A stretch of 64,000 nucleotides of DNA from Piromyces finnis finn (taxonomy: Eukaryota; Fungi; Neocallimastigomycota), in NCBI GenBank assembly GCA_002104945.1, contig MCFH01000011.1, positions 62,001-126,000 of the forward strand. The letters are read 5' to 3'. Position numbers and translations under genes: made by a program. A model generated the notes under the pieces. It saw nothing but the letters and a program-made list of their open reading frames with translations. It was not told the DNA's origin and searched no databases. Positions 15,941-41,062 of the stretch are shown piece after piece (within the stretch, counting starts at the first letter, position 1; each line of letters starts with the position of its first letter).

Positions 15941-18900
15941 ATGACTACAAAGGAAGAAAATTTAAATTTAACAATTTCACCTTTAAAAAGGAAATTTGAT
16001 CTATATTGTTGTATTAATAATGACAATAATATAGATCAAAATCCTTTTAAACCAAAGGATGAAAAATTTATTGAAAGGTTGGAATCATTTAAATCTTATA
16101 CTTGGTATCTAAAACCAAAACAATTAAATTCTTTGGAATGCGCTCTTCATGGCTGGTGGAATATTTCAGAAAATAAATTAGAATGTCATGATTGTAAAGC
16201 TCGTTTAATAATAAATATCAACTTAAACGACAGAGACATTGGTAAATGTTTATTGCTATTTTATATAGCCATATTTTATAATTATTTATAATTATTTATA
16301 AAATAATTTATTTTAAATTAATTTTTAATATATAAAAGATTCTTCTTTCATAAAAAAATATCATGAACAATTAAAACTATCTCATGCAAAAAGCTGTAAA
16401 ATGCATTGGCAATCATGTAATGGTAAACTTGAAATTATTCATTCTTTTTTCTTTCTTTTTCTCTCTCTTTTCTTTTAATAATATAGTATTAACTGAATTT
16501 ATTTAAATATTATATATTATATATTAAAAAATGAAGAATCAATATATCGTTTTCCAATTCTCCCATCAATTCGTGCATTCAACTTTTTTAAAAATAGAAT
16601 AAATTCATTGCTCCAAATTGAAAAATATTTACCAAAAATTAAAAAACCAACAATTTCATTTGTAAGTACTTTAAAAAAAAAAAAAGTAAATAAAAAAAGA
16701 TTTGATATTAAAATAAAATATAAAAAATTAATTTAATATTTATTATTATTAAATAATTAAAGGATGAAGAAAAACTAGAAAAATTAATTTATATATTAGA
16801 TTTACCTAAAACTTATTCCAAAGATATAATTGAAACAGTTATATACTTATCTATGTATGGTTGGCAAGGTTATAAAATTAAAGGAAAGGGATACATTCAA
16901 TGTCTATTTTGTAGGAGATTAGTTCAACTTCAAAATTTCGTTTCTCATAATCTTTCACATAATACTAATAATAATAAAAGCATTACAGAACAACAAGGAA
17001 ATATATTTGATATAAATAAACCATGGCATAATATAAATTTAAAAAGATTAAACGAAATACTATCAAAGAGAAAAGCATCAGAAAATATAGAAAATAATAA
17101 TAAAAAATTAAAAACAAAAAATGATGAAAATCAGGATGATGAAAATAATGAGGAAGATACAGCTATAGCTTCTAATGAAACTTCTCAATCTAAAAATAAT
17201 GAATCTGATTCAGATATCAATAATAATAATGTTAATACTCAAATACAGGATGAATCTTTTTATAATAATGATGAAGCAGGAAATATAACAAAAATTGAAG
17301 AAACTATCAATACTCAAAGAAACGAAATAAATAAAATAATGAAAGAACATGATGTTGTATTGGATAGTTCATTTTCGAACCTTTCGGGAGATGTATCAAA
17401 AATAAATGATATCGAAACAGACATACTAAATGACCATGATGCAACTGATAATTCGAAATTAGACTCCATAGATAATAATAATGAAACAATGGCCATTGAT
17501 AATAATGAGAAAATTTTAGATACTAATAAAATAAATAACGAAATAAGTAGTCATTTAAATAACCTCAATGAGAAAAATGGTCTTGTTAAAGAAAGAGAAG
17601 TAAATGAAAAAATAAACAAATCTATTATTAATGGCAATATAAATAATCAAGAAAATGAAGATATTGATAATGAGAATGAAAACCTTCGAAAGCAAGATAA
17701 ACTAAATGAAATTAAGAAAAACTTTATAAATTCCAAAATGGTTTCTGAGTCTGATAAAACAGAATCAGTAAATAAAACACAAATAGAGATGGAAGAAAGT
17801 AATTCGGAAAATGGTATTTTAAAGGATTCTAACACAGAGGATGAAAAAGATATAAATGAAAATTCAAAACCAAAAGAATATAAATTAGAAAATGACAATA
17901 AAGAAATGGAAGAAGAAATTAAAAAGGATTCAACATCTACTGATTCAGCATCGGAAGAACAAAAGATGAAAACAACAGCAGAAAAAGAAAATAATAATAA
18001 CGATAAATTTGATATTAAAATGGAATTAAAGAATAAAGATGATAGAATAGAAAATATGGAAACTGAAGAAAATTTAAATAGTCAAATAATAAATGAAAAA
18101 AATGAAAATGAAAAGAGTCATGATAAAGAAAATATAATTATTACTAATTATTCTGTAAATAAAAAGTCACAAGATAGTTTTAAACTCAAAATAATTGATT
18201 CAAACGAAAACAAAAATGAATTTGAAAATTCAAATAATCATCAATGTAATAATGAAGAAGAAAAGGAGAGTACGATAAAGCAAAAGAATGAAGAAAATAA
18301 AAAAGATGATACTAAAAAAGACGAAAAGAATAATATAAGCTCTGGTAATATAAATGAAAATGAAAATGAAAAAAATAAATTATCAAATAAGGATGAAAGA
18401 GAAAAAAATGAAATTAAAGAAGCTAATATTACCCAAACTATTACATCACATATCAAGAGTAGTAATGTTGATAGTAATGATGCTAATTTAAATAAAAACG
18501 AAAGTAGCAATTTAGATGAAAGTAAAAATAAGAATGTTGAAAATAAGAACACTGACAATAACAAAGATAATTCAATTAAAAATGAAAGTGGAAGTATTGA
18601 TAGTAACAACGATGATAACTTTGATGAAAATAAAGATGAAAATATTGTTAATAACAATAATAATTCAGACCAACATAAAAATGAAACTATTGACAGTAAC
18701 AAAGATAATTTAGATAAAGATGAAAGTGAAAATGTTGATAGTAATAATGATGATTTAGATGAAAATGAAAGTGAAAATATTGATAGTGATGACAATAATT
18801 TAAATAAAAATGAAAGTGATGATAATGATAATGATAATTTAAGCGGAAGTGAAAATGACAATGAAAATGAAAATGATAATAATGATAATAATAATAATAA

Positions 18901-20776
18901 TAATTTAAGCGGAAGTGAAAATGACAATGAAAATGAAAGTGATGATAATGATAATAATAATTTAAGCGGAAGTGAAAATGACAATGAAAATGAAAGTGAT
19001 AATAATGATAATAATAATTTAAGCGGAAGTGAAGATGACAATGAAAATGAAATTGATTTTAAAAAACATAATAATATCAATATTAAAAAAGCAAGTGATG
19101 AAGAAAGTGAAAATGAAATTGAAAGTGATGAAGATGACCAAGAAAATATAATTGAAAATCATGAAGTTACTGTAATTGAAAATGATAATGAAGATACAAC
19201 TGAAGATCGCGAAGTAACTGAAACTGAAAGTAGTGAAGGTGATATGGAGATTGAAGATAGTGAAATTAAAAACAATAGCGAAAATGAAAGTGAAGCTGAA
19301 AGTAATATTGAAGGTGATATGGAAATTGAAGATAGTGAAATTAAAAGCAATAGTGAAAATGAGTGTGAAACTGAAAGTAATGGTGAATTTGATAGTGAAA
19401 GTGAAGATGAGAATATAGAAAAATCAAAAGAATATTCTTCAGAAGCTGAAAGTAAAGATGAATTTGAAAATTATCAAAATGATTTATACAATGGAAATCA
19501 TTCTGATAATGAAAGTGATAGCAAATTTTCTAATGAAGAAGATGAGATGGATCAAAAGAATTATAATATGTACCAACACAACAATTTATCTGATAGTGTT
19601 ATCTGCCTTGATACCGATGAAAATAGTCAAAATTCATCAGAAGAAGAAACAAACTCTAGTAGTGAAAGTGAATTAGAAAAAACAGAAGATGAACAAATAG
19701 ATATAGATACGGAAATGGTATACAATCATTCTGAAATGAATAATAACTCACACCCATCAGATAGTTTGAATGAAAATAAAAAAGCTATATATGGCAACTC
19801 CCATAATAAAGATATATCACAAGATTTTACTGATGAGACTGATGAAGAAGAAGGAGTAATTGATATGACTATTGAAACTCCTGGATTTTCAACAATTTCA
19901 AATAGCCTAAATAATGATGATAATAGTGATAGTAGCAATAATAGTAATACATCAATGAACATAGATTCAGATCTAAATAATAACTCACCAAAACATCAAA
20001 TTGTTAAAGAACATAAAATAGAAGATAGAAATAGTAAGGATGAAAATATCGTTGAAGATAGTGATGATGATGATAGTGATGAAGAAAAAGTTGATAGTTC
20101 TGATAACAATGATAAAAGTAATAGTGAGGAAGATGATGATGATGACGAAGTTGAAGAAGAAGAAGAAGAAAATGGTGTTACTAATGATGCTGAAAATAAA
20201 AAGGAAAAAATAGATAAAGTAGAGGAAGAAGAAAAGCATACTGATGATAAGGATAAAAGTAATGATGAAACAAATAAAGAAGTCAACAATAAGAATGATG
20301 GTGATAGTAGTATAAATACAACTACAGAATTAAATAGTAACAATGAAAATCATTTTGTTTCATTAATAGAGAATTCAGAATCAACATCAGATTCTAGTAG
20401 TTCAGATCATGATAATAAAGTACAAATATTGCCTGCACCAAAAGAAAAAATAAAGAATACAAATAATAAAAACGAAAAGTTAATTGATTCTACAAAATTA
20501 AATGAAATCAAAAAAGATATGGAAAATACATCATTATTATTAAATATCGAAAAAGAGCATAAATCATACTGTCCTTGGATTTGTAAGAACGATAATGAAT
20601 TATCTGGATGGCAAATGACAATGAACGTAATTATTGCACAATTAGAACCAAAACCAATTATTACAGATGAACAAAAAAGATTCTCGTTAAAGGATACCCA
20701 TAACTTATTAAAACATATAAAATCAACACTTTCATCATCGATTCATAAACCTCAAAATAAAAAACAAAAAATCTAA
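15941..20776 (+). CDS. NIPA/ZC3HC1/Rsm1/Pml39-like C3HC zinc-finger (BIR-like) protein
   Basis: FIERLESFKSYTWYLKPKQLNSLECALHGW...LECHDC...HAKSC is the zf-C3HC domain. The second module starts LSMYGW...IQCLFCRR and is completed by EHKSYCPWI near the C-terminus. Four exons. Confidence 0.85.
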
Positions 20777-21321
20777 AATAAATAAAAAAAAAAAAAAAAG
20801 TTTAGCTCAATAATATTTATAGAATCTAGATTAAATTTAATAATAAAAATAAAAAAATAAAAAATGCAATTATTTTTGTATTCTATAATTTTGTTTTATT
20901 CTTTTTTTTTATTTTATTTTTATTTATTATTTATTACTATTAATAAATAATATAAATGAAACTTAAATATAGAGAATTTCATAATATTTCTGAAACTATT
21001 TTTTTTTAACAATCGTGCATATAAAAACAAAAATTTTATCTTTTTAATATGAATATTATGTACAAAAAAAAAAATAATAATAATAATAATAATAATAAAT
21101 ATATATATAATTATAACTATATAATTATAATAATATAATTATAATAAATAACTTTTTTTTTATCATCTAATAAAACATAATTAAATTTAATAAAATTAAT
21201 GATTTCTTTTTATATATATATATATATATATAATATTGCTTCAATTATTTTATTCATAAGCAAGCAAATATAAATAGTACGTTAAATGAAAAAAATATTT
21301 AAAATTATATATAATAAAAAA

Positions 21322-21827
21322 AAAAAAAAAGCATTATAATAAAGTAAATGACTTAAATAATAATACATAGACTAATTTAATATCTACATTTTTACAAAAT
21401 AAATTTTAAAAAAAAATTAAAGAATTTAAAAAAGAATTTCGTCCAATAACTATTACTATAAGCAGAATTAGTCACTTACTCAAGCCAGCTATCTCAATCA
21501 CCGTATCAAGCGAGTGGTTTTCGCTGCTCTGTTACCAGCCTCACGCATTACCCACTTCGTTAATAACCTTGTCAAGGAACCTACATCCCTTAACCAATGT
21601 TAACTCAATACTTGAATAAGACCGACTCTCTACATAAGTAGATCCTAAATCAGAATCTCATAGCTCATATTGTTCTACATTCAGTTGCTCAGAAGTTTAG
21701 CTTACAGGTCAACACCACTCAACCCAACTGTTTTATTTATTCTTTTTCTTTTCCTTATAAACCACTTTTTTCTAATATTCTCAAATTTTGGTGAGTCTTT
21801 TAACTTTTACTATGATTGGTTTATATT
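21322..21827. repeat. Left arm of 506-bp inverted repeat (partner 25914..26419)
   Basis: Compared block by block: position x pairs with 47741-x, with one mismatch (21389) across the arm. Confidence 0.95.
21431..21729 (-). ncRNA. Signal recognition particle (SRP/7SL-like) RNA, copy 1
   Basis: Exact reverse complement of the + strand copy at 26012..26310; the T6 terminator reads as A6 at 21428-21433. Confidence 0.9.
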
Positions 21828-21953
21828 GTTATTAAATATTAATTATTACTACACTACATTAATGTATAAACCACACAAATGTATTATAGGATTATTGTAA
21901 TTAAATTTAATAAGTACAATAATTAATTAACTGTTTACTATTATAATATATTG

Positions 21954-21984
<31 letters not shown>

Positions 21985-22057
21985 TCATTATTTTTTTTTC
22001 AATATTGCAGTTATCATTATATAATTATATTTTCTTTTTTTAATAAATTATATAGAA

Positions 22058-23289
22058 ATGTCTGACGAATTTTATGTAAGATACTAGTAAGTTATCAATC
22101 TCATTAAAGACAGTATATAAACAATTGATGGAATTGTAAAATTTAATAAAATTTAAACAATCAAGATTTTAAAATTCAACCTGTATTCTATTAAATTACA
22201 ATTAAACAGTTATAAATAAAGGCGAAAAACATTTCAATTGAAAATTAATCAATTAATTATGAATAAATTTCACATTCGAACACAAATTAAATTTGCATAA
22301 TTTTATTAATAAAAACAATTGATTAAAATGAGCACTTTTTTAATGGGAAAAAAATAAAAATGATAAATAATATTAATGTATTAATAATATAAAGTCATTG
22401 AATTTTGATTGTTAAATAAAGCATTGCATATATAAATTATAATTTAAATATATATTATTAACCATACTATTTTATTTAATTTAATAATTAATTATAAGTG
22501 TTGGTCATATGGGAAGATTTGGCCATGAATTTTTAGAATTTGAATTCAGACCAGATGGTAAACTCAGATATGCTAATAATTCTAATTACAAAAATGATTC
22601 AATGATTAGAAAAGAAGGTTAGAATAAACAATATTATAGCTTTTATATCAAATTCTAAGTAAAGTTATTATTAATGCAATACTAAATTGTTCCCAATAAA
22701 ATATTATTATTAATTTATAGTTTATGTCTCAAAGACTGTAATGAATGAATTAAAAAGAATTGTAGAAGAAAGTGAAATTATGAAGTAATTATACAACAAT
22801 AACAACAATGATAATATTAATAAATAATAAACAATATATATTAAATATGTTTAATTCTTTTAATATATAAAATAGAGAAGATGATAAATTATGGCCATTA
22901 GCAGATAAAGTTGGTAGACAAGAATTAGAAATTGTATATGGTGATGAACATATTTCTTTTACTGTAAGTATTTTTTGTATTAATTATTATAAGTAATTAA
23001 TAGAATAGGAATGTTAATATATAATGTTACTATATTTAGACTTCAAAATTAGGTTCCTTAATTGATGTTCAAGAAAGTGAAGATCCAGAAGGAATGAGAG
23101 TTTTCTATTATTTAATTCAAGATTTAAAATGTTTTGTATTCTCTTTAATTTCTAGTCATTTCAAGGTACAAAAAACAATTAAATTATAATTTAATTATAA
23201 TTATATAGTAATAGTAATATGAAAGATTGAAAATAATGATTAATTTCTATTATATATACTATTTATATTTATAGATTAAGCCAATCTAA
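22058..23289 (+). CDS. MAGO: Mago nashi, exon junction complex core protein (6 exons)
   Basis: Exons 22058-22086, 22499-22617, 22721-22784, 22876-22963, 23040-23165 and 23275-23289 give [49 protein letters not shown]...[15 protein letters not shown]. Absent from the ORF track. Confidence 0.97.
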
Positions 23290-24149
23290 GAAAATTACTA
23301 TGTAAAACTGACAAATATAAGATTAATTAAATCATTATTAAACCAAAAATCCAAAAAAAAAAAAATATTAATAATAACCATTATAATTCATCATGTAATA
23401 ATAATTTAACACATTAATTATCATAAAGATATTTCGTTCAAATCAAACATTTAAATATTTAATCTATTAATTAAAAATATATAAAAAAAAACATATAATA
23501 TATATAATAAAATAACAGATAAAATATAAAAAAAAAAAATAAAATAACTGTGTACTAGTGTTTATAAATAATGACTGTTTATTGTTGTTGGTGGTGGTGG
23601 TGGTGTTAATATATCATTAATATTACTGATTAGTAATATTATTTATTAATATATTGATCAATGTTTAAAATAAGATTTTCAAAAACATGTAACATTAATC
23701 ATATTCAATGTTTAATTATTAAATTATTAAATGAATAAATGTTTACTTTGTTATTATTTTATCATGTATTGATAAAAACTAAATGATTATGGTCAATTGT
23801 TTTTAATAAACTAGTTAAGTATATACTTTTTTTATTTTTATTTTATATATATTTTTTAGTATTGATTGACATGAATTGTTATAATATAGTGTTAAACAAC
23901 AACAACAACAACAAATAAACGTATATTTATTATGAAATAATAAAAAAGGTATATGTATATTATAATAAAAGTATACTAATTAAATTGAATATTCGTTAAA
24001 ATCTAGGAGTGCTTTGTATAAGATTTTTATGTATTTAGTATTATTTTTAAAAAGACAAACTCTAACCATTATTAAATTACATGGATTAGGTTATTAATAT
24101 ATTATATTTTACATTATTGTAATTTGTACATAAAAAAATATTTTATTAA

Positions 24150-24196
<47 letters not shown>

Positions 24197-24361
24197 ATTT
24201 TATTTTAAATTTTTTATTATCAAAAATTTAAATAATATTAATTGTATAAATATCATTCGACAATAAAAAAGATTAATTTCATAGAGAATATTTAAGCAGA
24301 AAAAAAATTATTAATCCCATTTTTTTACTAAAATATTTTTACTATTAAATATTAAATCAAA

Positions 24362-24999
24362 ATGTCTGGAAACGGTAATTTTTATTATTTTTAATCTAAA
24401 ATTATTATTATTATTATTATATATGTAAAGTAGTAGAAAGAATAAAATGAAAATAAATTGATAATTGAAAAATTGTGATTTAATATTTTTAAAATTAAAG
24501 ATTATAAAATAAAACAAAAAATAATAAAAACAAAACATAGTAAAAATTAATATACTATTAATAAAATATAAATGCTAATTATTTATATATTATATATATT
24601 TAAATTTGTTAATGATGTTTATATAAAATATAGATAAATTCGATACTGCCGCTGTTGAAGTTAAACAACTTACTTACAGACCAAGCGATTCTGAACTTTT
24701 AGAATTATATGCTTACTACAAGCAAGGTACTGTTGGTGACAATGAAACCGAAAAGCCAGGAATTTTTGATCTTAAGGGTTCTGTAAGTAGATAAATAAAT
24801 TTTAAAATTAAAATAAATATGAACAATGGCAAAATTCATTAATTGTATTTATTTTTTTTATTAATGTATAAATAAATATATATATATTTTTTTAAAATAG
24901 GCTAAGTGGAAGTCCTGGAATAAACTTAAGGGTATGAGCAAGGAAGAAGCTCAAGCTAAGTACATTGAACTTGTTGAAACTTTAAAGGCTAGAAACTAA
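24362..24999 (+). CDS. ACB1: Acyl-CoA-binding protein (3 exons)
   Basis: Exons 24362-24374, 24634-24782 and 24901-24999 give MSGNDKFDTAAVEVKQL..RPSDSELLELYAYYKQGTVGD...KPGIFDLKGSAKWKSWNKLKGMSKEEAQAKYIELVETLKARN*. Confidence 0.95.
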
Positions 25000-25980
25000 G
25001 AACAAAAGAAATTTTTATAATTGTAAAATACTAATCAATTAAATTCAATTGTGAAAATATCAGCTTTTTAACTATACATAAATGATAAATTTCATTTATA
25101 TATTGTAAAATTAATTAAATCCATATAAATAGAAGCTATTTTTATAGAATAGTAAAATAGTAACAAAAAAAAAAAAAAAAAAGTAATAAAAAATAAACAA
25201 CAACAACAACAACAAAAATCAAATTAAAATTTTAATTTAATAATGTAATGAATGGTTTATTGTATATTAATGCTTCCTTTTCTTATTATGTAAAAGTTAA
25301 AAAAGAAAAAGTGTTATAAAGTTAAAGTTTTTTTTTTTTATTTTTTAATTTGAATTATATAATTTTTAAATCTTGAAGAAATAAATATAATATTAAGTAT
25401 ACTGTTATTAAATTTACCATTTTATCTATATTAGTATAATTATACTTTTTTTTTTTTTTAAAAGAAAAGAAAAAGTTTATTTATATTATGAAATATAAAT
25501 GAAAAAAGTATAAACAAACAAACAAAAAAAAAAAGATAAAATAAAGGAATATAATCAATGTATAGAGACATTATTTGATAGAATAATACTAGTATTTTTA
25601 ATAACAAAGGTTATATATGTATAAATTATCACATATATAGGTGAATTTGTATTCTTTTACTTTTCCTTTTTCTAAAATGCCATATATTTACAAAATTAGA
25701 TGATTAAATTTCTTTTATTATTATGACAAAAATTGGAGGTCACCTTCAGCTTATTTTATCTATATTTAATTAGGTTCGTTGGTTTATACTAAATCACCTT
25801 ATTAAACTAATTTTATTAATATAATTATTAATTAATAACAATTTTTTTATTGATAATATTTAGGTTCCACAAAATTATATTAATTAGATAAATAATTAAT
25901 AATTAATAATAGTAATATAAACCAATCATAGTAAAAGTTAAAAGACTCACCAAAATTTGAGAATATTAGAAAAAAGTGGT

Positions 25981-25988
25981 TTATAAGG
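25981..25988 (+). promoter_or_regulatory. TATA-like element ~31 nt upstream of the SRP RNA gene (Pol III)
   Basis: TTATAAGG at about -31 from the inferred 5' end, duplicated in both arms. Weak evidence in an AT-rich genome. Confidence 0.35.
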
Positions 25989-26011
25989 AAAAGAAAAAGA
26001 ATAAATAAAAC

Positions 26012-26310
26012 AGTTGGGTTGAGTGGTGTTGACCTGTAAGCTAAACTTCTGAGCAACTGAATGTAGAACAATATGAGCTATGAGATTCTGATTTAGGATC
26101 TACTTATGTAGAGAGTCGGTCTTATTCAAGTATTGAGTTAACATTGGTTAAGGGATGTAGGTTCCTTGACAAGGTTATTAACGAAGTGGGTAATGCGTGA
26201 GGCTGGTAACAGAGCAGCGAAAACCACTCGCTTGATACGGTGATTGAGATAGCTGGCTTGAGTAAGTGACTAATTCTGCTTATAGTAATAGTTATTGGAC
26301 GAAATTCTTT
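26012..26310 (+). ncRNA. Signal recognition particle (SRP/7SL-like) RNA, copy 2 (~299 nt)
   Basis: Helix 8 is GAGG-CTG-GTAA-CAG-AGCAG (26199-26217; SRP54-binding loop plus GNRA tetraloop). Helix 6 is GTTAAGGGA...TCCTTGAC with a GTAG (GNAR) loop. The Alu domain has a UGUNR motif (CCTGTAAG) and AGTTG/CAACT pairing. Long-range helix 5 pairs include CTATGAG/CTTATAG. It ends at a T6 Pol III terminator. Confidence 0.92.
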
Positions 26311-26313
26311 TTT
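26308..26313 (+). terminator. Pol III oligo-T terminator of the SRP RNA gene
   Basis: TTTTTT lies immediately after the 3' strand of helix 5, ~300 nt from the 5' end. Confidence 0.7.
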
Positions 26314-29084
26314 AAATTCTTTAATTTTTTTTTAAAATTTATTTTGTAAAATTGTAGATATTAAATTAGTCTATGTATTATTATTTAAGTCATTTACTTT
26401 ATTATAATGCTTTTTTTTTCTTTTATTTATTTTTAATTATTAATGATATACATTAATATACCATTTACATCATAGTATTGAATATAAAACGTTAGCAATA
26501 AGTGTAATTTATTGAAAAACAAACAATTTTTAATGTATTATAAATAATAATTATTATCTAATCTTTAAAGAAGCATTCTTATTTTTTTTTAAAAAAAGAA
26601 ACATATATATTAATAAATAAATATTGAATTTTAAAATTCAGAGTTTTATAAAAGTATGAAAAGTGCTATTGCATGAATAAAATTTTTAAATATATGATAT
26701 ATAGTTGTTATTGTAATCTACCTATAGAATTTGTTTTTACAAAACTAAAATATGTATTATAAAATATTTAAAAGTATACATAAAAATAAAATTTACTATT
26801 ATGAAATATCATTTTATTTAAAAATATAATCAATATTGTTTATTATCATTGTTATATTTATTTTTCAAGTATGAATTTAAAAGCAATAGTTTCAATATTT
26901 TTCATAAATCATTTTTAAAATAATTAGTTATATATATAATTTTTTAAATGAAAATATATTCTCATTAAAATAAAAATCTTCATTATACAAGTTAAATAAT
27001 ACTTATGGATAAATTATATATTATTATTACTAATCTTAATTTTAATATTTTTTTTTTTAAAATAATAAAATTCACACTTTTATAACTTTTAAATTATTAT
27101 AATAGTAATCACTGGTAAACTATTACATTAGCCAAGTTTTTCTTTTTATTACTTTTTTTAATTGTAAGCACAACAGCTGTAATGTATTTAATATGAATGA
27201 TATCAATTAATTTTAATACTACTTTTCAAAAGAATAAAAAACAAAAAACAAAAACAAAAAAACCTTAATTCGATTATAGTTTAAGATTCATTTCTAATAA
27301 AAATATTAAAAAAAAAAAAAAAATTAAACAAAATAATTCATTTTTAAATAATAAAGTAATAATCTAAATTTAATATATATATATTTTACATTTGATAAAT
27401 CTACAACTTTTTACTAATAGTTGAATTATTAAGAAATATCTTTTTAAAGCGAATATAGAATATATATATATATTTGCTATTAGTTATGTTGAATAATATG
27501 GTTAATAATATTTATTTCTTTTAAATATTTTTTAATATAATACTTTATTTTTAAATAAAGTTTTTTAAGTTTAATTTTTTATAATAAAAAAAAAGAATAA
27601 TTAATAATTATGTTTTGATTATTTTAGTGAAAATATTAAAAAACAAGATAAACAAACAAATATTAATAAAATAAAACAAAACAAAATGAAAAAAAAAGTA
27701 TAAAATAACCTAATTTATTTGTTATTTTTTTAACTTTTCTGATTAAATTATTCGTTTTTGAAGTCTCCAAATTCATTTTAATAAAAACATTTTTTTTAAC
27801 TCCGACATTAATTTTATTTTTTTTATTAAATTTCCTTTATAGTATTTTATAAACAATAGAAATATTATAAACAATTATTATTATTATTATTTTTTTTCAT
27901 AATAACATATATATATAAAATTTCTTTATACAGTATATTAAATTTTAAGAAAACTAATTTATTATAAAATGGATTTTTAAAACAGACGCTTTAAATAAAA
28001 GAAATTGTTTATTAAAGATTAATAAATACTAAGAAAAAATTATATAATTTGAAAAGTTTTGTTTATATATTTAATGCTGTCGTACTATTTTCCTATTTTA
28101 TTTATGAATATTTTTGAAAATATATATATATATTAAATAACAAAAAAATTAAATTGTTTAACTTTTGAAGTAATTAAAAAAAAAAAAACAAAAAAAAAAA
28201 AAAAAACATAATCTTTCTCCAATATTTATTTTCCTTTTATATTGTTAATGTAAATGATCTAGTCAAATGAAGCATCATGATACTACTATATTTATAAAAT
28301 TATTATGGTTTCCTTTTAATACTATTCAATATTTAAAATCATATCCATAAATATATAATGAATGACCTTTTTAATTAAAGTATCATTTTTAACAATAATA
28401 TATATAAATAATAAATAATTATTTACAGGATTAATTAAATTTAAAATGAAAGATAATAAATTAAGAGTGTATATAACTTAAAAATGTTTAAAATTCTATA
28501 TTTAAACAATTTTATATTGTAATAATAATGAATGAATAAATGATATATATTGTTTAAATAGATCCAAGTATTAATATGCATATTATATACATAAACTAAT
28601 GAAATATATATCTTGTAATATAATATTACAAGTAAATGTAATAAATGTTAAGTATAGTTTATTGATAACAATTATTAATATTAGTTAAAGTTTATAGAGT
28701 TTAAGAATAATTGAATATTATTATTCAGTAATATTGTAATATTATCAAAAGTATTATTAAATACATTATCAAATAATCATTGGTTTTGAATTGTAAAAGT
28801 TTTAAACATATAAAATATTATTTAATAACCTTTTTTTTATCGATTATGTATTTTATTAATATACATTTTAACCCAAATGGTTTTTTATTAAAATTATATA
28901 GTAAAAATTATAATAATTAAATAAATTTATTATTTAATATTACATTATATATATATAAAACCTTTTTTTCCTTTTTTTACTTTTTTTTTTTCTTCTTTTC
29001 TTTTTTTTTTAAAATTTTTTTTTTAAAAAACCTTTATACATAGATTGATCAAAATATGTATAAATATTGTTGTATATAGTTATA

Positions 29085-29127
<43 letters not shown>

Positions 29128-29700
29128 AGATATTTATAAACCATTAAAAAAATATAAAGCATCAATCTATGATTTAATATTTAATTAAATAAAAAAATAT
29201 ATATATAAAAAAAAACAATTATAATATATATAAATATATAAATAATCGATTAATTCATTTTTAATTGCGTATTATCATTTCCTCAATATTTCCATGTAGC
29301 TATTATGATATAGAAGATAGTAAAAAAAAATTAGAATTCGTATTTTTGTTAATAGCAATTTAATATACCGAATAATATCATCACAATTTAAGCTTAATTT
29401 ATTAATAAAAATATTGATTTATTTATCATTACTTATTACATGATATAAAAAACTATTCTTATTTTAACAAAAAAATAAAATTTCTTAATTAATAGAATAA
29501 AACAAGAAAATCATATATAACTTTCTTATATTAATTTAATCATAATAAATTTATACTTTATAAAAATTTAAAAAAAAGTACATTAAATTTTACTATCAAA
29601 CGTAATAAAAATTAAATTTCTTGTTTAATAATATTAATTATCAAATATATATATTTATAAAAGATTATTTAATAATAGATTATAAAATTATATAATAAAA

Positions 29701-36926
<7,226 letters not shown>

Positions 36927-37807: not shown

Positions 37808-41062
<3,255 letters not shown>

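Follow-up and report, generated by a model that had tools for sequence, protein, structure and literature searches.

An inverted pair of SRP RNA genes around Mago nashi and ACBP in an anaerobic fungus: a DNA-level duplicate possibly kept identical by gene conversion

Eukaryotic SRP (7SL) RNA genes often occur as small multigene families, the human RN7SL1/2/3 genes and the 7SL families of plants among them. Inverted repeats with a recombinational history are known from quite different settings: the palindromes of the human Y chromosome and the plastid inverted repeat are homogenised by arm-to-arm gene conversion, and the latter, which carries rRNA genes, exists as flip-flop isomers. Site-specific invertible segments include that of the 2-micron plasmid, in which the FLP/FRT system works with 599-bp inverted repeats, and the invertase switches of bacteria. 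Pol III genes have a further known association with chromosome organisation, in that tRNA-gene/TFIIIC insulators are chromatin boundary elements. The locus described here, from Piromyces finnis, touches on each of these.

Within the window (the whole stretch of 64,000 nucleotides that was analysed), two 506-bp arms at 21322-21827 (minus strand) and 25914-26419 (plus strand) are complementary to one another at 505 of 506 positions. The sole mismatch, 21389 against 26352, lies 68 nt from the outer end, and identity stops beyond the arms, where the nearest mismatches are 25913/25912 (inner side) and 26420 (outer side). As the in-register match in the flanks beyond is only 15-55%, chance could not account for so long a stretch of identity between the arms. 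Each arm comprises an SRP RNA gene extended by 99 bp upstream (99/99 identical between arms) and 110 bp downstream (109/110). The left gene is on the minus strand and the right on the plus strand, and the outer ends, read in gene sense, fall within a T run: 15 T in the left arm and nine T, a C and four T in the right. The inner ends lie outside any homopolymer, so that only the outer pair of arm ends is placed in one, and A/T runs of at least nine make up only ~4% of the local sequence. The sequence-only reading of this stretch had described arms differing at one base, each with a full SRP RNA gene and about 100 bp of either flank, with the genes pointing outward and the outer ends in an A/T homopolymer, and all of this is borne out. 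The twin ORFs that it had judged spurious are likewise both present, at 21670-21900 (plus strand) and 25880-26071 (minus strand), and these two ORFs are hereby corrected.

The SRP RNA genes, at 21432-21728 (minus strand) and 26013-26309 (plus strand), are 297 nt long, full-length and letter-identical, with complete Alu and S domains. They were called with cmscan and the RF00017 covariance model (Metazoa_SRP, clan CL00003), against which both score 149.4 bits, well above the gathering score of 70, over model positions 1-299 (E 1.5e-38 for the left copy). The alignment pairs CCUGUAAGC and GGUAAC/AGCAG with the RF00017 consensus, and the Alu-domain helices with their UGUAA motif can be recognised together with S-domain helix 8, its GNAR tetraloop and the conserved internal loops. 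At the 3' end of each gene a T6 run read from the sequence (21428-21433, minus strand; 26308-26313, plus strand) is a putative Pol III terminator, with more T runs beyond the left one.

Upstream, a CCAAT[C/A]A box that the earlier reading had missed follows the start of each arm by 6-8 nt. It is present as CCAATCA at -91, at 21813-21819 (minus strand) and 25922-25928 (plus strand), and is kept at -91/-90 in all four SRP genes of the genome. A CCAAT[C/A]A box is found upstream of 13/13 small-RNA genes examined in the genome, among them SRP, U6, U2, U4 and MRP genes, against a background of 1.5%. Standing at a fixed upstream distance, the box may be regarded as a candidate promoter element of snRNA type. 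A TATA-like box lies closer to the gene, as TTTATAA at about -33 to -27 in the left copy (21755-21761, minus strand) and near -30 in the right (25980-25986, plus strand), with a similar motif at the same place in the U6 genes and in the SRP genes of contig C172, considered below. From these features each arm is predicted to be a whole, self-sufficient Pol III transcription unit, consisting of distal box, TATA-like box, gene and T-run terminators. A bacterial promoter and terminator scan of the locus gave no excess over shuffled sequence, and is irrelevant to a eukaryote.

The genome contains four SRP genes, two more than the sequence-only reading had recognised. Both additional copies are on contig C172, solitary and 166 kb from one another; they score 145 and 140 bits against RF00017 and are 88-92% identical. 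Among the paralogues, 13 of 91 predicted base pairs have changed on both sides and yet are still paired, with only four cells broken; the SRP RNA structure is thus backed by compensatory change, and the S-domain core is unchanged across all three SRP RNA variants. Segmental paralogy of the C172 loci was considered and rejected, their neighbours being unrelated (a mannosyltransferase and CotH in one case, Hsp70 in the other). Since the C172 genes are solitary and diverged, homogenisation, or concerted evolution, is confined to the inverted pair. The U6 genes are also solitary.

Between the arms lies a spacer of 4,086 bp (21828-25913) in which, as the earlier reading had it, two housekeeping genes reside, both on the plus strand and each present as one copy in the genome. 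Their exons were searched one by one against Pfam. Mago nashi has six exons (22058-22086, 22499-22617, 22721-22784, 22876-22963, 23040-23165 and 23275-23289), with splice sites read from the sequence; PF02792 matches the four that were tested, in order, over profile positions 7-138. The gene for acyl-CoA-binding protein (ACBP) has three exons (24362-24374, 24634-24782 and 24901-24999), of which exons 2 and 3 match PF00887. Both genes start and stop within the spacer, their own 5' regions included, and beyond them the spacer contains no recombinase, no ORF of at least 50 aa and no further Pfam or Rfam match.

Metagenomes were scanned for relatives of the locus. An exact-pattern scan for 31 nt that do not vary among any of the SRP copies found nothing. 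A metagenome scan with ACBP exon 2 identified one close relative (L005; 92% amino acid identity) on a 2.4-kb contig, on which no SRP gene was found. Its ACBP gene and the neighbouring beta-tubulin gene lack introns that are present in this genome, where the closest beta-tubulin copy is on another contig. The L005 contig may be cDNA-derived or chimeric and for this reason is given no weight as evidence on synteny.

How did the pair arise? A transposon with terminal inverted repeats, or a foldback element, was rejected because the arm flanks occur at only these two places genome-wide; nor was any convincing direct repeat of the target-site duplication kind seen at the arm junctions. An SRP retrocopy or SINE, for which a 3' A-tail, no accompanying upstream promoter and usually a truncated S domain would be expected, was also rejected: in the arms 99 bp of promoter accompany the full gene, and the gene is followed by T runs rather than an A-tail. 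With promoter and downstream DNA included, the S domain kept and no A-tail, the duplication must have been at the DNA level. The sequence-only reading had inferred that the inverted duplication was recent or that conversion was still going on, and this is sound in that even the non-coding downstream flank is near-identical between the arms. No part of those 110 nt is common to the C172 loci, so the flank is not conserved for function and selection alone is an insufficient explanation of its identity.

The reading we prefer, with confidence that is moderate at best, is that a complete SRP RNA unit was duplicated in inverted orientation and that gene conversion between the arms has since kept the two copies identical. 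A duplication of ~0.5 kb would have created the pair, and arm-to-arm conversion would have kept it letter-identical, a case of local concerted evolution that the 4-kb distance would favour. The repeat has the form that conversion would leave, its arms being near-identical throughout, non-coding DNA included, around a unique spacer. Inverted repeats of such size convert much faster than they mutate, and do not delete. An arm start close to the promoter box is also to be expected if conversion has acted, because unconstrained upstream DNA decays whilst the constrained part retains the homology that conversion needs; identity on the promoter side would thus end where functional constraint ends, and on the 3' side at a T run of variable length. 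The benefit, if any, would probably be no more than a double dose of one SRP RNA variant from the predicted genes.

A very young segmental duplication (~0.5 kb, in inverted orientation) that has had no time to diverge, and was perhaps joined by template switching at the A/T homopolymer, would need no conversion at all. This is distinctly possible, and we rank it just below conversion, as nearly as likely. It accounts well for 505/506 identity with sharp boundaries, for arm flanks that are unique in the genome and for an outer junction in a T run despite the scarcity of such runs locally; on the other hand, a random breakpoint must then land no more than 8 nt away from the distal promoter box. 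Sequence beyond the arms bears on both readings. At the inner boundary a weak remnant of similarity is seen (75% and 55% identity in the 20-nt bins spanning and preceding the boundary), the local alignment score on this side being equalled by 6/300 shuffles (empirical p from 0 to 0.08, which is marginal). This colinear remnant counts weakly for conversion acting on a decayed pair and tells against a new duplication. Past the outer end, local alignment against shuffles detected no significant decayed homology, which fits the recent origin and counts against conversion, as does the perfect identity up to both edges, where a gradient of differences is expected of an old converted pair. Old and young pairs are both compatible with this test. 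Nor can identity alone date the pair, because inverted repeats, once formed, are expected to persist and convert, a consideration that also weighs against the need for a very recent origin.

The other suggestion of the sequence-only reading, a maintained invertible cassette bounded by non-coding RNA genes, finds no support, and we regard as most improbable the idea that the arms are recombination sites and that the orientation of Mago nashi and ACBP matters functionally. Its appeal is geometric: homologous recombination can work on near-identical inverted arms of 506 bp that lie 4 kb from each other. No dedicated recombinase lies in or next to the segment, however, and the spacer and flanks contain no other ORF or RNA family. 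Nor would orientation alter expression, as no promoter or part of a gene crosses a boundary, the SRP genes lying wholly inside the arms. The assembly shows one orientation. Crossover between the arms leaves the SRP genes intact and the spacer genes keep their upstream regions, so that flipping would change nothing obvious; a flip of the Mago-ACBP spacer by occasional crossover is possible and would be neutral, a by-product of the paired arms and not a switch. It is very unlikely, too, that the genome itself carries a single SRP copy at this place and the second is an assembly artefact. The assembly statistics fit PacBio/Falcon/Quiver, which can yield inverted chimeras and homopolymer errors, but the structure is embedded ~83 kb deep in a contig that exceeds 468 kb, each arm joins unique and differing sequence on both sides, and the arms differ by one base and in the terminal T run. 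Moreover, the reads are far longer than the 506-bp repeat, and chimeric reads produce full palindromes that lack a unique 4-kb spacer with intact single-copy genes. By analogy with tRNA-gene insulators, the divergent Pol III genes might be a chromatin boundary pair isolating Mago nashi and ACBP, with both copies under selection. Two active-looking Pol III units do bracket a short gene pair, but the solitary state of the other two SRP genes and of the U6 genes makes such a role very doubtful. A broader proposal, that small structured-RNA genes of this fungus recurrently form exact inverted twins bracketing resident protein genes, through a boundary role or perpetual copy-correction of an essential RNA gene and with two flip-flop isomers, seems to us unlikely, if somewhat less so than the boundary pair taken by itself.

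If conversion has indeed acted, the locus shows, cleanly and on a small scale, how an essential Pol III gene can undergo local concerted evolution in a fungus that is early-branching and extremely AT-rich. Should the twin inverted layout prove recurrent and conserved for RNA genes of anaerobic fungi, a selected genome architecture would be indicated. New here are the view of the arm as a Pol III unit with a box at -91, the exclusion of a transposon and a retrocopy, the absence of switch features and the annotation of the genome's four SRP RNA genes. The CCAAT[C/A]A box may turn out to be more useful than the twin genes, both for annotation and for expression tools in fungi that are hard to engineer.

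Set beside the described systems, the P. finnis pair shares with 7SL families an RNA of ~297 nt with Alu and S domains, a U-run terminator and several slightly differing copies, but in this case two copies stand as an exact inverted pair with unrelated genes between them, and the predicted promoter is of an upstream, snRNA type (CCAAT[C/A]A at -91 with a TATA-like box) common to U6, U2 and U4. Additional genomic 7SL-like copies are also the hallmark of the SRP-RNA-derived retroposons Alu and B1; the arms differ from these in having 99 bp of upstream promoter, 110 bp of downstream DNA and the S domain, and in lacking an A-tail. Like FLP/FRT and the invertase switches, the locus has inverted repeats of similar length around a segment of a few kb, although it lacks a recombinase gene, a short specific site and an orientation-dependent promoter. 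There is a likeness, too, to the Y-chromosome palindromes and the plastid inverted repeat, where near-identical arms similarly surround a unique spacer, non-coding DNA is as identical as the genes and inversion of the spacer by crossover is expected, whereas the arms here are 0.5 kb long and carry a single Pol III gene, with conversion and isomers inferred from the sequence of the pair.

A base-by-base comparison in register places the core of the repeat at 506 bp, 21322–21827 against 25914–26419, with a sole mismatch (21389 versus 26352); a repeat search of the window reported the arms as 21297–21848 and 25893–26444 at 97%. Identity drops sharply beyond both ends of the core. Each arm consists of 99 bp of upstream DNA, a 297-nt SRP RNA gene and 110 bp of downstream DNA. 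The left gene occupies 21432–21728 (minus strand) and the right 26013–26309 (plus strand), each matching RF00017 over model positions 1–299 with 149.4 bits (gathering score 70 bits), so that the two are transcribed in opposite, diverging directions. Read in gene sense, the outer arm ends fall in a T run (15 T for the left arm; for the right, 9 T, C, 4 T), and the inner ends show no homopolymer. A sequence-only reading had described just such a 506-bp inverted repeat differing at one base, with a complete, outward-pointing SRP RNA gene in each arm and homopolymers at the outer ends, and these features are all confirmed. It had also called the twin ORFs spurious, and the two ORFs in question (76 and 63 aa, overlapping the SRP genes) are indeed ORF-calling artefacts. 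A permissive Rfam scan identified no further RNA family in 20700–29800. Elsewhere in the window, 33760–34190 and 38110–38460 give imperfect long inverted matches (82–96%) between short-period coding repeats in a pair of large, oppositely oriented ORF regions; the similarity is one of low complexity and marks no structural inverted repeat.

The 4,086-bp spacer (21828–25913) was said to carry two conserved housekeeping genes, and this holds: reading the exons from the sequence gave Mago nashi (22058–23289, plus strand, six exons) and ACBP (24362–24999, plus strand, three exons). With single exons searched separately, four Mago exons match PF02792 colinearly over profile positions 7–138 and two ACBP exons match PF00887. 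Each gene is present in one copy in the genome. No other ORF of at least 50 aa and no recombinase-like sequence is found in the spacer. Beyond the right arm, 26420–29700 is a stretch of ~3.3 kb at 15–17% GC (the window ranges from 15 to 32%) with no ORF longer than 47 aa and no RNA-family match, which is either intergenic DNA of unusual length or a missed intron-rich gene. To the left, a single ORF of 1,307 aa (16853–20776) encodes acidic and asparagine-rich low-complexity repeats, with periodic units of 75 nt and 66 nt near 19000–19460 and a weak C-terminal match to NuBaID_C (PF08600, E 3e-6).

Alignment of the regions upstream of all four SRP RNA genes in the genome revealed only two conserved elements, a CCAATCA box at −91/−90 (21813–21819 in the left copy, 25922–25928 in the right) and a TATA-like box near −30, ~60 nt further downstream. 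The first of these, as CCAAT[C/A]A and with a TATA-like box ~60 nt beyond it, is found upstream of 13/13 small-RNA genes examined at a roughly fixed distance: at about −91 in the two SRP genes on contig 172 (L003 and L004), at −89 in two U6 genes (L015, as reverse complement, and L016), at −101 to −117 in five U2 genes and one U2-like gene (L022–L027), at −102 in the U4 gene (L029) and at −66 in the RNase MRP gene (L028). Its background frequency is 1.5% of AT-rich 130-nt windows of the stretch. We infer that it is a candidate PSE/USE-like element of an snRNA-type promoter in this fungus. The identical arm begins 6–8 nt upstream of the box. At the other end, the 3' end of the gene has runs of T6, T9 and T4, T runs being the signal at which Pol III usually terminates. 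Each arm therewith makes up a complete, self-sufficient transcription unit plus ~75 nt without evident role. The left SRP gene and Mago nashi are divergent, with only ~330 bp from the SRP start to the Mago ATG, and their control regions may therefore overlap. The interval from the left SRP promoter to this ATG contains a run of 29 A (21954–21982).

A search of the whole genome (56,455,805 bases, 232 contigs) found four SRP RNA genes. The two outside the repeat, C172a (L003:1501–1797, at C172:269514; 145 bits against RF00017) and C172b (L004:1501–1798, at C172:435182; 140 bits), are 166 kb apart in direct orientation. Each is solitary, with unrelated neighbours (one gene sits beside a mannosyltransferase and CotH, the other beside Hsp70) and no inverted partner within 5 kb on each side. 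The two arm copies are 100% identical over the gene, compared with 88.9% for the arm copies against C172a, 88.0% against C172b and 91.9% between C172a and C172b; homogenisation is confined to the inverted pair and is not genome-wide. Differences among the three variants concentrate in the Alu domain and helix 6. All three are under structural constraint and their divergence is old, since 13 of 91 predicted pairs have changed in a compensatory manner with pairing kept and only four cells are broken. The genome thus has three different SRP RNA variants, all of them apparently functional.

An exact 31-nt SRP pattern had no match in the metagenome collection, and a scan with ACBP exon 2 gave one close relative at 92% identity, a 2.4-kb contig (L005) that carries no SRP gene. 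On this contig, which comes from a related anaerobic fungus (L005:366–2225), an intron-less ACBP of 86 aa stands head-to-head with an intron-less beta-tubulin. In P. finnis each of the two contains introns and they are on separate contigs, the best beta-tubulin match being interrupted, apparently by an intron. The L005 arrangement may be a cDNA-derived or chimeric contig, or a real rearrangement, and for that reason carries no weight here. The literature searched yielded no paper on anaerobic-fungal genes for SRP RNA or snRNAs.

How did the pair arise? Three origins were considered and rejected: the arms are neither transposon ends (their flanks, 99 nt upstream and 110 nt downstream, are absent elsewhere in the genome), nor retrocopies (the upstream promoter is included and there is no A-tail), nor a section of some larger duplication (the window's other long inverted matches are only low-complexity coding repeats). 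The downstream 110 nt, identical from arm to arm at 109 positions, are not common to the contig 172 loci. Purifying selection therefore cannot explain this identity, which requires recency or gene conversion; the argument made earlier from the near-identity of the flanks is thus sound. We give roughly an even chance to conversion acting on an established inverted pair, in which arm-to-arm exchange would hold the copies identical and upstream DNA would decay where constraint ends. This older, converting pair is favoured because the inner boundary coincides with the promoter edge and because a weak colinear remnant is seen at the inner end: identity is 75% and 55% in the 20-nt bins spanning and preceding the boundary, with an alignment score reached by 6 of 300 shuffles (empirical p between 0 and 0.08 for the different lengths and directions). 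Past the outer end there is no decayed homology (local-alignment z <0 against dinucleotide shuffles; empirical rank 0.35–0.95 against other AT-rich segments). A very recent duplication is somewhat less probable, and has in its favour identity that is perfect up to both edges and an outer junction in a T run, A/T runs of at least 9 making up only ~4% of the local sequence. In inverted repeats of 0.5 kb that lie a few kb from each other, conversion is much faster than mutation and, unlike in direct repeats, there is no deletion, so that identity is a poor clock.

The maintained invertible cassette that had been offered as an alternative is unsupported, and as a functional device it is very improbable: there is no recombinase in the spacer, the spacer genes are self-contained and retain their own upstream regions, a crossover leaves both SRP genes intact and the assembly has a single orientation, in which Mago and ACBP are co-directional with the large ORFs on both sides. 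Crossing over between the arms would invert the Mago–ACBP segment, and probably does so at some low rate. Likewise very improbable, and speculative, is the idea that the paired Pol III units form a boundary or insulator. It is similarly improbable that the repeat is an assembly artefact, as it lies ~83 kb from the end of contig 13, which is >468 kb long, different unique DNA adjoins each arm on both sides, and the reads behind such an assembly are far longer than 0.5 kb. The P. finnis assembly (56.46 Mb, 232 scaffolds, 21.2% GC) was built from PacBio data with Falcon, FinisherSC and Quiver (PMC12341934, PMC5622200).

The feature, then, is a local duplication of a multicopy RNA gene with homogenised copies. 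On contig 146, three U2 snRNA genes are arrayed head-to-tail at a period of ~922 bp (C146:599794–601833, L022–L024), their gene bodies scoring equally and their spacers 86–94% identical; local duplication of small-RNA genes is therefore not limited to the inverted form.
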